From positions 243,143,731 to 243,160,093 of the forward strand of contig JANKJI020000002.1 of NCBI GenBank assembly GCA_024626585.2: a stretch of 16,363 nt of DNA. Direction: 5' to 3'. The notes beneath the pieces were generated by a model that was not told where the DNA came from, did no database searches, and saw only the letters and a list, made by a program, of their open reading frames with translations. Both the position numbers and the translations under genes were made by a program. Below are positions 1-10,754 of the stretch, piece by piece. The stretch's first letter is position 1. The number at the start of each line of letters is the position of its first letter. This DNA is from Ginkgo biloba. Its lineage: Eukaryota; Plantae; Ginkgophyta.

Positions 1-1188
1 TTTGCTTGGACACTAGATACCAAATATGCACATACATACAAAGGGTTCGCAACATGGCAGACACCCGCATAAGGAGAGGGCGATACTCTTATCTTGCATT
101 ATGTTCATCATAGGTTTTAGCAAAGCAAGAGATCACTGGACGTAGACATGGTTGGTACAGTGAGGTTTCAACACTATCTCAGACGATTGGTGTATCGATT
201 GACAGGTTGGCCCTTTCAAATTCTCTTTGGATGCAGAGAATCTCTACCTACAAGGACGTAGATCAATGAACAGAATTGGGAGAACATTTCCATGGCCTAC
301 ATTCAGTCTACATGGATCTCCCCAACTAGGGCCCTTAGCTCCAAGTTGGCCCTCTATCAAGAACACTTTCTTCGCATCTCTGACGACACCATAAACCTTC
401 CAGGCTACTTATGCCTACATATGTCACATGGTATGTGGTTCCCCATTGGGCAATTCAGAGTATGCTCTCGTCAACTCAGGATGGAGGTAGAACATCATTT
501 ACCCAAAGACCAGTGCACTTGTAAACTTTGTTCACTTGAGGTAGAGACGAAGGAATACTACATCTTTCGGTGTTCCATATTTTATGAGATCAAAGGGACA
601 TATTATTGCCTTTTCAACAACACAGGAGGGTCCCTTGCAACATTCATCTCATACGAGAAACAACAATGTGTTGCTCTCTTCCTTAGAAAGCTTTTCCTCC
701 ACATGCACCGCCTCCTAAGGAGTGTGACATAGCATCGTGATAAAACTCAATGTATCATTTCTTTCTTTTAGTTGATGAGCTCAGTAGTGGCACAAAAGCG
801 TCCAAGACACACACAGAATCCCCAACACGACATTCGACATTATTCAGAGACCAGGACCAATCACCGTCAAGACAACACAACTCAGTAGAAGACATCCCAA
901 ACCCAAGAGGGTCCTCTCACGGCAAAGGGGGGCAACTCTGGAGTTAGGAGAGGCAGACTTATTACTAGTTCCTTTAAGCCAAATAGAGGATCTTCGACCT
1001 TGGATGGTGGGAGAGAGATAGGGACAGGAAGACAAATGATAGAATCCGTTTGAAGAGCCATTAATGATCATACTATAGAGCCTATCATTAGACAGGCTCT
1101 AAACGAGTTTGTGGTAGTCAACCACTCGTAGACCTAGCATAATACATCAAAGGAGCATTGGGATTCCAATGCTTCTTGTTGGCGCCCT
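1..1188 (+). mobile_element. Non-LTR retrotransposon (LINE) copy 1, 3' portion: post-RT ORF2 region, C-terminal zinc finger, tail and 3' UTR. Runs off the window at the 5' side and into an N-gap at the 3' side
   Basis: Frame 3 from nt 3 reads CLDTRYQICTYIQRVRNMAD...YSYLALCSS*...WYSEVSTLSQTIGVSIDRL, then shifts to PFKFSLDA. ORF 292-732 contains GQFRVCSRQLRMEVEHHLPKDQCTCKLCSLEVETKEYYIFRCSIFYEIK, matching the R-x-S-x-H-x-L-x-[IV]-E ... C-x2-C ... E-x-H-x4-C module of LINE ORF2 C-termini. It is colinear with a second copy at 9479-10754. Confidence 0.85.
3..1131 (+). pseudogene. LINE ORF2 C-terminal part (pseudogenised); probable true stop at 1129-1131
   Basis: Frame 1 continues from 292 to 1131, interrupted by TAG (730, 769, 886) and TGA (1051), each one C>T transition from CAG/CGA. 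It ends EPIIRQALNEFVVVNHS*, homologous to DDLIRQSVGDFVLVDVS* (10648-10701) in copy 2. Confidence 0.75.
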
Positions 1189-4120: not shown

Positions 4121-4311
4121 TTGAAGTATGGAGTACAACTTATACTCAAACTAAGTCTTCCACCCTTTCTTCCACGAGGCTCTACAATATCCATATGTAA
4201 TATTATAATACTACTATCTGTTAGCTTAGGTTGAAGTATGGATTATCACTTATGCTCAAACTAAGTATTCCACCCTTTATTCCACAAGGCTTCATAGTAT
4301 TCATATGTAAT
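4121..4311. repeat. Diverged direct repeat, ~80-bp matching block with 110-bp period
   Basis: 4121-4200 versus 4231-4310 (TTGAAGTATGGA...CTCAAACTAAGT...CACCCTTT...CATATGTAA): 12 mismatches in 80 nt by manual count, no indels. Confidence 0.9.
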
Positions 4312-4326
4312 GTTGACTAGTTCTGG

Positions 4327-4383: not shown

Positions 4384-5131
4384 NNNNNNNNNNNNNNNNN
4401 NNNNNNNNNNNNNNNNNNNNNNNNNNNNNNNNNNNNNNNNNNNNNNNNNNNNNNNNNNNNNNNNNNNNNNNNNNNNNNNNNNNNNNNNNNNNNNNNNNNN
4501 NNNNNNNNNNNNNNNNNNNNNNNNNNNNNNNNNNNNNNNNNNNNNNNNNNNNNNNNNNNNNNNNNNNNNNNNNNNNNNNNNNNNNNNNNNNNNNNNNNNN
4601 NNNNNNNNNNNNNNNNNNNNNNNNNNNNNNNNNNNNNNNNNNNNNNNNNNNNNNNNNNNNNNNNNNNNNNNNNNNNNNNNNNNNNNNNNNNNNNNNNNNN
4701 NNNNNNNNNNNNNNNNNNNNNNNNNNNNNNNNNNNNNNNNNNNNNNNNNNNNNNNNNNNNNNNNNNNNNNNNNNNNNNNNNNNNNNNNNNNNNNNNNNNN
4801 NNNNNNNNNNNNNNNNNNNNNNNNNNNNNNNNNNNNNNNNNNNNNNNNNNNNNNNNNNNNNNNNNNNNNNNNNNNNNNNNNNNNNNNNNNNNNNNNNNNN
4901 NNNNNNNNNNNNNNNNNNNNNNNNNNNNNNNNNNNNNNNNNNNNNNNNNNNNNNNNNNNNNNNNNNNNNNNNNNNNNNNNNNNNNNNNNNNNNNNNNNNN
5001 NNNNNNNNNNNNNNNNNNNNNNNNNNNNNNNNNNNNNNNNNNNNNNNNNNNNNNNNNNNNNNNNNNNNNNNNNNNNNNNNNNNNNNNNNNNNNNNNNNNN
5101 NNNNNNNNNNNNNNNNNNNNNNNNNNNNNNN
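4384..5131. other. Largest assembly gap. Others at 1189-1288, 2373-2472, 5350-5380, 6411-6510, 7625-7724, 8629-8712, 9289-9305, ~13229-13328, 14492-14592, 15199-15298
   Basis: Runs of N. Most are about 100 nt, the usual unknown-size placeholder, so true distances across them are unknown. Confidence 0.98.
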
Positions 5132-5981: not shown

Positions 5982-6900
5982 TCACCTAAAAGACCAATCG
6001 ACCATGCCATCCAACTAGAACAAGGGTCAAAACAAGTTTCTTGAATCCCATACCAAGCTCCACTCAAGCACATCGCTAAGTTCGAAAAAGAACCTACAAG
6101 GCCTTATCAACAAGAATTACATTCGACTTAGTACTAGCACATTTGGCTCCCCTATTTTGATGGTTAAAAAGGAGGATGACTCAATGAGACGATGTGTCGA
6201 TTATAGAGCTCCCAATAAAATGACAATTGAAAATAGATATATGTTACCTCATATCACAAATCTCCTCGATCGACTCCAAGGAGTTAAAGTATTTAAAAAA
6301 CCAACCTTAGAAGTGGCCATCACCAAATCAAATAAAAGTACAGGACGAATGTAATCAGCATTCCGAACAAATTACAACCCATATGAATACTGTTGCTCGG
6401 CCTCCCTAATNNNNNNNNNNNNNNNNNNNNNNNNNNNNNNNNNNNNNNNNNNNNNNNNNNNNNNNNNNNNNNNNNNNNNNNNNNNNNNNNNNNNNNNNNN
6501 NNNNNNNNNNATATGAGTACTGTTGCTCGGCCTCCCTAATGCATAAACAATATTCATGACTCTCACAAATGGCTTATTTTGTCCTTACTGTAATAACTTT
6601 GTAATTATCTATCTCAATGAGAAAGAACATAAAACACACTTACAACCATCTCTTGAATTCTACAAGAAAATCACCTCTACATCCACATGAAGAAATCTAA
6701 GAATTTAACACCAAATTATCATACGTCAGACACATCATATCAACTAATGGTATTTTCTTAGACCGTGAAATAATCGAAGCCATCTTATGATGGATACAAC
6801 CATAAACAATCCATGACATTCGTGCCTTCCTAGGGTTAGCCACCTTCTATGATAAATTTATCAAAGATTTTGCCACATATCGACCTATCTTAACAAGCTA
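5982..6900 (+). pseudogene. pol: Ty3/Gypsy reverse transcriptase remnant
   Basis: PKRPIDHAIQLEQG...PY; YIRLSTSTFGSPILMVKKEDDSMRRCVDYRAPNKMTIENRYMLPHITNLLDRLQG; NLRSGHHQI; SAFRT...YEY; GLPNA*TIFM; FVIIYLN (YLDD broken by D>N plus a short deletion); IRAFLGLATFYDKFIKDFA. Confidence 0.95.
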
Positions 6901-8790: not shown

Positions 8791-8877
8791 GATCTGATAT
8801 ACACCCCACTAGTTGATGCAACACATGATCACGTACATACCTTCCCCCAAGAAAACAAGGTCGTACTAGCTATTGCG

Positions 8878-9015
8878 ACCACCATTATTTGCAAACAAAC
8901 AAAAACCTTGTGCAGTGAAACCATAATCAAACACCAAATCAAGTGGAAAGGATACTCGACAAAGGAAGTCACCCTGCACACTAAAGAATAACTCCAACAA
9001 TATCCAAAACTTCCT
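8878..9015 (+). pseudogene. Integrase C-terminal chromodomain remnant
   Basis: TTIICKQTKTLCSETIIKHQIKWKGYSTKEVTLHTKE*LQQYPKL (cf. IL..R......EYLVKWKGY..EEATWE...L..YP.L), which is diagnostic of chromoviruses. Confidence 0.8.
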
Positions 9016-9478
9016 CGCAAAAACCAAGTAATAGGTGTATCTACTAAAATAACAAAGCAAGGGTAATTAAAAGCTTCTTGGTCAAAGGATCAAGATCATG
9101 TCCTCGCTAGCATATATATACTCTAAACATGATATATTGTAACCAACTTTTAGTATTGAATCATACTTGGTCACTGAGGACTACCAACAACTCTTAGCTC
9201 CCACTTTTGTTTATGCATGAATGTTCAAGCCTGATTCTACTCTAACATCTTCATGCATGGTCCCTTAGTTACATCCCAAGCATGCCTCNNNNNNNNNNNN
9301 NNNNNCAATATCTACATCTGTAACCCACTCAACACTCTCTTAAACGTAAGGTAATAGATCAAAATTCTTAATGAACCCCAAATTTGGATGCCCCTCTAGA
9401 AAGATCTCTTTGAGGCATTAGCAACCATATTTGATTTCTCTGTCGATTCAATCCCATGTGAAACTTATCGGGTGTCGT

Positions 9479-10754
9479 GGATCACCACTAATGATGTGAA
9501 TTCCTACTCCTACGTGACATTTGCCCAATTTAACCAAGAACCCACAAGTTTGTAGATTCCATCAAGACAAGACCCTCTTACACATTAGTGTTGAATATTG
9601 TGGGATCAATGTTGAGCAAAGAATGAGCTTTGATTCTTTATATCTATCAATTCTTAAAACCTTGTTCATCCAAACCTCTCAGGAGACTCATTGCTTAAAT
9701 CAAGTAATGTTAAAATCACTACCTAACACTATGCTCTTGATAGAGATTAACAACGTAAGAGACCTCTAGAGATATACATGGATCATGCAATGAGACATCT
9801 GCCTTACTCTAGATTGTTGAGATCTTTCTTGATAAAGTACCAACCTTCGCATTTTCTCTCAATGCTCTTAATCTCCACATGACCCCAAAGAATATTAATG
9901 GGCACATCCATGGAGACATATCGTGCGTATCTTCTACTTTTCTAAAGGAACCATCAATCCTCTAAGTTACTTGCACTTGCACACGCTGCACGAGATGACG
10001 ATTCCACTTGGATGATTCAGAGTTTGCCCCCACCAACCCCAAGTGGAAGTCGAACACCAAGTACCTAGAGATCAACACATTTGTAAGTTGGCTTTTGATG
10101 TCCCGTACTTTTTAAAAATCAAGGGAAAATATTAAGGCATTTGTAAAGATTCAAGGGGAACCCTCTCTACATTCATCTCCTGTAGAGACCAAAAATGTGT
10201 AGCCTTTTTCCTTAGAGAGCTTTTTCTTCATAAATGTCACATTCTAAATAAAGACACCCAACAAATTGATGAGGTCCAAAACATCACTCCAATCTTTCAG
10301 TTGCAACCTTAATAGCAAGACATAAATGCCCAACTTGCACATAAGACAATCATGAGACATCAAGAACTATCTACGGACTCTAGCTAAACGCCAACCTCCA
10401 ACACAAACCATCGAGAGATTCCCTAACAAAGTTGTGCAACCCACCAGGAGACATCTTCCCATGGCTAGGAGAGTAGAGGCTAGACCAATAAAGTTCATCT
10501 TATTACCAATTTCTTTTGTAGAGAGGATGGGGGCCTAGCCTTGAGTGTTAGGAGTAGCAAAGAGAAGAGTAGCAACAAAGATAGATAATCCATTCAAACC
10601 ACATAGATCACACAGACAAACATGAGACCCCAAATGACTTGGCAATGGATGATCTCATTAGACAAAGTGTGGGCGATTTTGTCTTAGTGGATGTTTCGTA
10701 GTTTGTTACACCACCACTCTTTGTTCATGCAACATCACATGACAAATAAAAAAA
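9479..10754 (+). mobile_element. LINE copy 2, same family as 1-1188; 5'-truncated, with probable 3' end (AATAAA + A-run)
   Basis: GSPL..VNSYSYVTF (RT C-terminal V-x-S-Y-x-YLGV-x-F) at ~9479-9522; IFLDKVPTFAFSLNA; TINPLSYLHLHTLHEMTIPLG*FRVCPHQPQVEVEHQVPRDQHICKL[deletion]..KIKGKY*GICKDSRGTLSTFISCRDQKCVAFFLRELFLH, colinear with ORF 292-732. Terminal ...FVLVDVS* at 10701; AATAAAAAAA at 10745-10754. Confidence 0.85.

Follow-up and report, generated by a model that had tools for sequence, protein, structure and literature searches.

In the human long interspersed nuclear element (LINE) L1, retrotransposition requires both PCNA and the PCNA-interacting protein (PIP) box of the ORF2 protein (ORF2p; ORF, open reading frame) (PMC10830420, PMC5371812), and PCNA recruits RNase H2 in the process (PMC10830420). 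PIP boxes are likewise carried by the transposases pogo, Tigger and Lemi1, where their functional relevance is unclear (PMC5371812), and a structure of Arabidopsis PCNA is available (6o09; PMC10653895). Here we study a stretch of 16,363 nucleotides from the genome of Ginkgo biloba (contig JANKJI020000002.1; hereafter the window), which contains two decayed copies of the C-terminal end of a LINE ORF2. A previous reading of the letters alone (the sequence-only reading) had found in the tail of this ORF2, behind the zinc finger, three PIP-box-like "islands" and had proposed that they dock the protein on PCNA. The PIP box of pogo is C-terminal and reads QKKITDYF. To our knowledge, human L1 is the one LINE for which a dependence of retrotransposition on PCNA is established; its motif is internal, and the role of the motif is still debated. 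A search of the literature on the PIP box together with ORF2, non-long-terminal-repeat (non-LTR) elements or plant LINEs returned the human L1 work and one review, and no account of a tail motif in a plant LINE.

The relatives of the Ginkgo element resemble human L1 in being LINEs whose ORF2 bears a canonical PCNA-interacting motif. In human ORF2p, however, the PIP box (residues ~404-419) lies in the tower between the endonuclease (EN) and the reverse transcriptase (RT), whereas here it lies in a disordered tail past a Cys/His domain and the PCNA contact is predicted from sequence; the clade differs as well, the RT of one relative (P0153) being nearer to R2 RTs, and the relatives have a second, C-terminal motif. 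As the contexts of the L1 and plant LINE motifs show no sequence homology, the likeness would be due to convergence and not to inheritance. The pogo, Tigger and Lemi1 proteins are likewise transposable-element enzymes with a PIP box, and that of pogo is almost identical to QKKITDFF in relative P0050, but they are DNA transposases and not LINE reverse transcriptases. Plant PCNA clients (Q-x-x-I-x-D-F-F, as in the 6o09 peptide) supply the best PDB match to the family profile, in this case a peptide from a host chromatin protein and not from a transposon protein. Motif class and enzyme class are shared with known cases; position, clade and probably valency differ.

We consider it on balance probable that positions 733 to about 1053 of the window are the inactivated C-terminal tail of the ORF2 of an old LINE, and that in its relatives the proximal of two tail motifs docks ORF2p on PCNA. 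We infer this binding because human L1 needs a PIP box and PCNA and because pogo-type transposases carry PIP boxes.

A conserved motif in the ORF2 tail

The two copies comprise the following features, given with their positions in the window and their strand.

1-258 (+): remnant of the part of ORF2 past the RT, copy 1, upstream of the domain; its frame is shifted from that of 262-729, and the window start truncates it
262-729 (+): C-terminal Cys/His domain of LINE ORF2, copy 1, in frame 1, with relatives found by phmmer
730-732 (+): TAG stop in place of an ancestral Gln codon (CAA in copy 2; Q in P0001, P0004, P0012, P0025 and P0042)
745-768 (+): proximal PIP-box-like motif TQCIISFF (island 1), a decayed copy of Q-x-x-I-T-x-F-F, 26-30 residues past the anchor Cys (667), as in relatives
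769-771 (+): TAG stop in place of an ancestral CAG (Gln) (CAG in copy 2 at 10298-10300; Q after FF in P0012, P0006, P0005 and P0060)
793-810 (+): basic cluster QKRPRH, 8-9 residues past the proximal motif
823-846 (+): island 2, QHDIRHYS, unsupported as a motif; aligns with EDPSW / DDPLL in relatives
952-975 (+): probable distal PIP-like motif GRLITSSF (island 3), by MAFFT placement and a frame-correct [IL]IT..F match
1051-1053 (+): likely ancestral ORF2 stop, or close to one (TGA); the tail length fits relatives
1054-1188 (+): probable 3' untranslated region (UTR) remnant of copy 1, collinear with copy 2, its extent estimated; truncated by a run of N at 1189
9872-10309 (+): copy 2 of the same domain, more decayed; frame mod 3 = 2, with stops at 9896, 10013 and 10133
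10274-10297 (+): proximal motif of copy 2, VQNITPIF, decayed; aligned in frame with 745-768, first aromatic lost
10493-10516 (+): distal motif of copy 2, VHLITNFF, with the I-T-x-F-F core intact in the copy's own frame

Comparison with relatives identifies island 1 as a decayed copy of a family-wide, positionally fixed match to the PIP-box consensus. We compared 60 tails of at least 45 residues and an enlarged set of 85, searching for a core ([ILMV]-x-x-[FY]-[FY]) and for the canonical box (Q-x-x-[ILMV]-x-x-[FY]-[FYW]). The core starts 28-34 residues past the anchor in 33/60 tails (52/85 in the enlarged set), and the box is canonical in 15 and 26 tails of the two sets, respectively; shuffles of the 60-tail set, scored over a wider window, yielded 2.6 cores (maximum 8) and 0.17 canonical boxes (maximum 2). 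A stricter ELM-type PIP pattern fits 25/85 tails. Among the 33 core instances, I and T are each found in 30, the first aromatic is F in 27 and Y in 6, the final F stands in 32 and Gln at position 1 in 15, with examples such as QKKITDFF (P0050), QTSITDFF, QRQITEFF, QSQITSFF and QRTITTFF.

In an alignment of 20 sequences (A2), T260 never varies and conservation reaches at least 90% at I259, F262 and F263, which is the level of the His and Cys of the finger, while the flanks vary freely. The codons of the motif vary synonymously between loci (I as ATC, ATT or ATA; T as ACT, ACA or ACC; F as TTC or TTT), so that the constraint acts on the peptide. When a profile of 30 columns around the motif was compared with PDB sequences, the best match was the 20-residue peptide chain of 6o09 (PLVQTKIIDFFRIQRSP), over 17 residues and with E = 0.11, which is not significant alone. 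Another conserved [LI]-x-T-F-F string, SLATFISY at 631-654 (S-L-S-T-F-F in relatives), lies ~39 residues upstream of the PIP box, inside the confidently modelled folded domain, and we do not count it among the candidate docking motifs.

In an exhaustive phmmer search with the copy 1 domain, 223 relatives came up at E<=1e-3 (best 7.9e-36). Almost all are short gene calls on decayed copies; those with named sources come from Diphasiastrum complanatum, Ceratopteris richardii, Adiantum nelumboides and Taxus chinensis. Because the domain immediately follows a reverse transcriptase in the longer relatives, that in the window can be assigned to the C-terminus of a LINE ORF2, as the sequence-only reading had it: RVT_1 lies upstream of the Cys/His domain in P0153 (1.4e-17, with YADD), P0104 (9e-15), P0158 and P0160, and at locus L006 an RVT_1 gene directly precedes it. 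The finger of copy 1, CKLCSLEVETKEYYIFRC at 520-573 (CKLC...YYIFRC), has Tyr in place of His; the ORF2 family follows the pattern C-x2-C-x7-8-H-x4-C, with H and C as invariant columns in A2. The zf-RVT match is weak in P0037 and P0156 (E about 0.005-0.008). A Pfam search of the window pieces, 262-729 included, found no family, and 262-729 had no match in a word-index protein search whose index covers only proteins of 86-273 aa.

An intron of a Diphasiastrum myosin gene (L005) contains a segment resembling the end of an endonuclease, the RT start, the domain and the tail; the ORF at 8872-9903 begins with the EN-end-like ...SDHS... followed by the RT start, and has no Pfam match. Among PDB sequences, R2 RTs match the RT of P0153 with E = 5e-13 to 2e-11, and human L1 ORF2p does so with E = 3.5e-7. 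Being closer, among PDB sequences only, to the R2 RTs, the element therefore probably belongs outside the L1 clade. It is apparently an old non-L1 LINE, putatively of the apurinic/apyrimidinic endonuclease (APE) type, with a C-terminal piece of its ORF2 in the window.

Copies at fern loci (L002 1729-2730 and 4195-4428; L008 3921-4006) have a (TC)n/(CT)n microsatellite ~200-290 nt downstream of the ORF2 stop, and a (TC)13 run stands just 5' of the lycophyte copy (L005 8833-8859); the 3' tail of this LINE therefore looks like (TC)n and not like poly(A). Six database "proteins" (P0010, P0026, P0040, P0117, P0196 and P0200) show the LINE domain fused to host domains (AMP-binding enzyme, UvrD-like helicase, pseudouridine synthase, KH domain) and are probably gene-model chimeras across intronic LINE fragments.

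Decay of the two copies and the distal motif

In copy 1 the open piece 262-729 comprises 156 codons in frame 1 of positions 1-1188, and the called ORF (292-732) ends at TAG 730-732. Upstream, 18-242 matches residues 32-100 of P0008 in frame 3, and 6-212 matches residues 121-181 of P0031 (tblastn). Beyond 730, frame 1 is interrupted at 769 (TAG), 886 (TAG), 1051 (TGA), 1129 (TAG) and 1135; stops were read as X in our analyses. The tblastn alignments of relatives nevertheless cross the stop at 730 in frame 1 and reach 768-837. Relatives carry Gln at this position, and most of them also have Gln after the FF, the place of the stop at 769. Copy 2, as previously reported, has CAA (10259-10261) and CAG (10298-10300) at the equivalents of 730 and 769. 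On the evidence of these alignments, the tail beyond 730 was coding in the ancestor.

The sequence-only reading had carried frame 1 on to 1131 through former sense codons, and this stands past 730 with an earlier end. Counted from the anchor Cys (CVALFL, 667), the tail measures 128 aa to the TGA at 1051, inside the 89-135 aa of the relatives, and 155 aa to 1131, outside this range, so that the old ORF2 would have ended at ~1051. The ancestral stop was therefore probably near 1051, and by the same tail length 1054-1188 is probably a remnant of the 3' UTR. The basic cluster has KR-rich counterparts at the equivalent offset in relatives (GVKRPS, GTKRH, SNKRR, CRRRR, RSRRPRP). Both motifs carry mutations in the window, where stops of the C-to-T type also interrupt the frame, so that nothing in it is functional.

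The RT itself is absent from the window, copy 1 being cut at the window start and copy 2 being 5'-truncated. Copy 2 spans ~9872-10590 with its tail; a deletion of 32 nt has removed the middle of its finger (DNA alignment A1). Positions 379-768 of copy 1 match 9941-10297 through the stop at 730 (tblastx, E 2e-25), and P0004 and P0008 also match copy 2 (tblastn). For the rest of the tails (772-1131 versus 10310-10705) the global DNA alignment has z = 8.5 against dinucleotide shuffles, so that both descend collinearly from a single sequence; beyond ~770, a strict local alignment of the DNA gave nothing above shuffles. In a sliding scan of 24-nt identity between the copies, islands 1 and 3 are among the top four, tied with 1083-1131 (16/24 for each of 1083-1106 and 1108-1131, versus 10653-10701), while island 2 is outside the top eight. 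The three islands, whose coordinates were given correctly, are hence not the only conserved parts of the tail.

Nor do all of them fit the form I-x-x-aromatic-aromatic/hydrophobic that had been ascribed to them: TQCIISFF, VHLITNFF and, out of frame and with its stop ignored, S*DIKNYL (the asterisk marks the stop) conform, and QHDIRHYS, GRLITSSF and VQNITPIF do not. Island 2, which had been likened to the RFC1-type variant, falls away as a motif. It has no PIP-like counterpart in relatives, and its version in copy 2 (S*DIKNYL, 10350) is in frame mod 3 = 0 versus 2 for the other islands and has the stop inside the motif. The proposed trivalent arrangement is accordingly reduced to two motifs in relatives, proximal and distal, with island 3 plausibly the distal one.

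Evidence for the distal motif comes from tails with a proximal motif and 35-130 further residues. A second strict core ([ILMV]-x-x-[FY][FY]) is present in 9/40 of these, against 0.72 by chance (maximum 5); in an earlier set of 48 tails the figures were 13/48 and 1.4. The distal motif of relatives stands 3-20 residues ahead of the stop, for example as H[AS]MTDFFLPKK (P0158 and P0187), RITVFF (P0004), WIKSFF (P0012), QITLYF (P0025), RITSFY (P0008), QSSIARFF (P0131) or SLLDFF (P0054). Other subfamilies have hydrophobic endings such as ILRFLH, MMDLLHP, MLDILGP and PMYxILHP. Conifer-type endings read M-T-D-F-F, I-T-x-F-F or Q-S-S-I-A-R-F-F, and fern-type endings M-M-D-L-L-H-P or P-M-Y-x-I-L-H-P.

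MAFFT aligns GRLITSSF (952-975) and VHLITNFF (10493-10516) with the distal motif of the nearest relatives. The string IT.[FY][FY] occurs just twice among the 29,521 six-frame codons of the window, once as island 3 of copy 2 in the correct frame, and [IL]IT..F has three matches in six frames, two of them being island 3 in copy 1 and in copy 2, with the frame correct in both cases. Against this identification, the linker to island 3 is longer in the window (69-73 codons) than in relatives (43). From placement and frame, we regard it as rather likely that island 3 corresponds to the distal motif of the relatives. The other IT.[FY][FY] string, MEKITTYFT at 2217 in frame 3, is chance-like and lies inside a tandem repeat (2213-2322) made of two copies of a 55-nt unit with 98% identity.

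Elsewhere in the window, 4121-4204 and 4231-4314 form an 84-nt direct repeat (85% identity, spacing 110) that adjoins a 748-nt run of N (4384-5131). The window holds eleven N runs with 1581 N in total.

Docking on PCNA and its alternatives

Structure prediction and codon comparison bear on what the tail does. In an AlphaFold2 (AF2) model of P0008 (the C-terminal 347 residues, without the RT), the folded domain extends to residue 251 and is followed by residues with a predicted local distance difference test score (pLDDT) <50, among which short helices are predicted at 256-261, on the proximal motif (256-263), and at 330-338, on the distal motif (331-339). Both traits of a PIP box, a disordered accessible site and a short helix on the motif, would thus be present in this model. 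Codon comparison had been suggested as a measure of constraint along the tail, and gave weak signals in two pairs of decayed copies. For L006 versus L007, both from one sample, the domain has a ratio of nonsynonymous to synonymous change (dN/dS) of 0.06, and pN/pS in the tail as far as PQPPP is 0.54 (P = 0.21); the tail of the fern pair L002 versus L008 has pN/pS 0.49 (P = 0.04), and a third pair of copies is saturated. Conservation of the motif across taxa, as read from the sequences, is the stronger argument.

A number of observations weigh against docking on PCNA. The motif in the window has its Gln at position 2 and not at position 1, and about half of the core-bearing relatives are without the position-1 Gln. 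Rev1 or Mlh1, too, can be the partner of a PIP-like motif. Support from dN/dS is weak, as expected for dead copies, and most relatives are fragments of decayed copies, with no intact full-length ORF2 recovered. As to the distal motif, that of ferns is without the aromatic pair, and a profile of the distal half-tail (P0004, P0012, P0025, P0042) searched against the six-frame window had no match at islands 2 or 3. Finally, T-rich DNA can yield FF in two frames: at L006 ~6640-6700 the called frame reads SQRSIQSFF and the next frame DLSRVSFFRP, the latter backed by P0083 and P0095, so that single decayed copies may mislead on FF motifs.

It is very improbable that the tail in the window is merely untranslated or decayed sequence and its islands chance reads of T-rich DNA through stops. 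Inside the window alone the loose pattern is indeed not beyond chance (probability of at least three hits 0.06-0.13; six-frame background 1.8 per 133 codons), the islands are not uniquely conserved between the copies, and copy 2 has island 2 in a different frame. In relatives from four named plant genera, however, the frame is open and the motif stands at an equal offset, and in-frame alignments of relatives cross the stop at 730; the explanation holds only for island 2 and 1054-1131 and is refuted for island 1. If the peptide is selected, it might be so for folding, with I-T-x-F-F as a structural helix that packs onto the RT or the Cys/His domain and recruits no host factor. The tower of human L1 is held to the RT by the "PIP helix" (PMC10830420), which also contacts palm and fingers, and the AF2 model of P0008, made without the RT, could not display such packing. 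Yet the motif lies past the last confident helix, in the segment of pLDDT <50, and its flanks are variable in sequence and length, of low complexity and rich in Pro, Ser and Arg, which is the signature of a linear motif; we hold a structural role of this kind to be improbable.

The motif may also be a selected short linear motif with a partner other than PCNA, such as the Rev1 C-terminal domain, Mlh1, a plant-specific factor, ORF1p or, together with the basic cluster, the nuclear import machinery. Conservation of a motif itself names no partner, position-1 Gln is missing from many copies, a basic cluster always trails the motif, and the PDB peptide match is just E = 0.11. Set against this are the 26/85 fully canonical tails and the 25/85 that fit the ELM-type pattern, as well as I-T-D-F-F and M-T-D-F-F, which are classic PCNA-binding cores (p21, Cdt1). 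There is also precedent for the use of PCNA in human L1 and pogo (PMC5371812). A different partner thus seems unlikely to us, albeit less so than a structural role or chance.

Under the favoured explanation, docking of ORF2p on PCNA, working relatives would have a disordered extension of ~90-135 residues behind the Cys/His finger domain. It would begin with a near-invariant PIP box, Q-x-x-I-T-[S/D/T/E]-F-F, 28-34 residues past the domain, followed ~10 residues on by the basic cluster, a variable, basic and Ser-rich linker and, 3-20 residues before the stop, the second hydrophobic motif. Through the proximal motif, ORF2p would bind in the hydrophobic pocket of PCNA at the integration intermediate, either while target-primed reverse transcription is under way or afterwards, much as human L1 ORF2p does with its internal PIP box; the distal motif may add a second PCNA contact. 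A further suggestion, that the motif serves as a PIP degron timing the destruction of ORF2p to S phase, found no support. The degron read by CRL4-Cdt2 in Cdt1 and p21 resembles some relatives in the T-D at positions 5-6 (QKKITDFF, QTSITDFF, MTDFF), but its required basic residue at +4 is not conserved here. Most residues at +4 are P, S, T or E, position 6 is in turn S, D or T, and 0/85 tails fit T-D plus a basic +4.

Meaning for LINE biology

On a wider and, in our view, doubtful reading of the sequences, an old non-L1 LINE lineage of lycophytes, ferns and conifers would bear a disordered C-terminal clamp-docking module combining a canonical PIP box with a basic patch and, at the C-terminus, a second PIP-like motif, and PCNA capture would then have arisen independently in plant and mammalian LINEs. 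With two PIP-like motifs on the module, a single ORF2p could contact two protomers of the PCNA trimer. If this were true, target-primed reverse transcription would need PCNA capture in general, by convergence across LINEs. The conserved motif suggests that recruitment of the sliding clamp may be a recurring strategy of LINEs, and it would add a LINE case to the transposons that target sliding clamps (pogo, Tn7, IS elements). In plants, the tail motif may offer a peptide-sized handle for probing the dependence of LINEs on PCNA.

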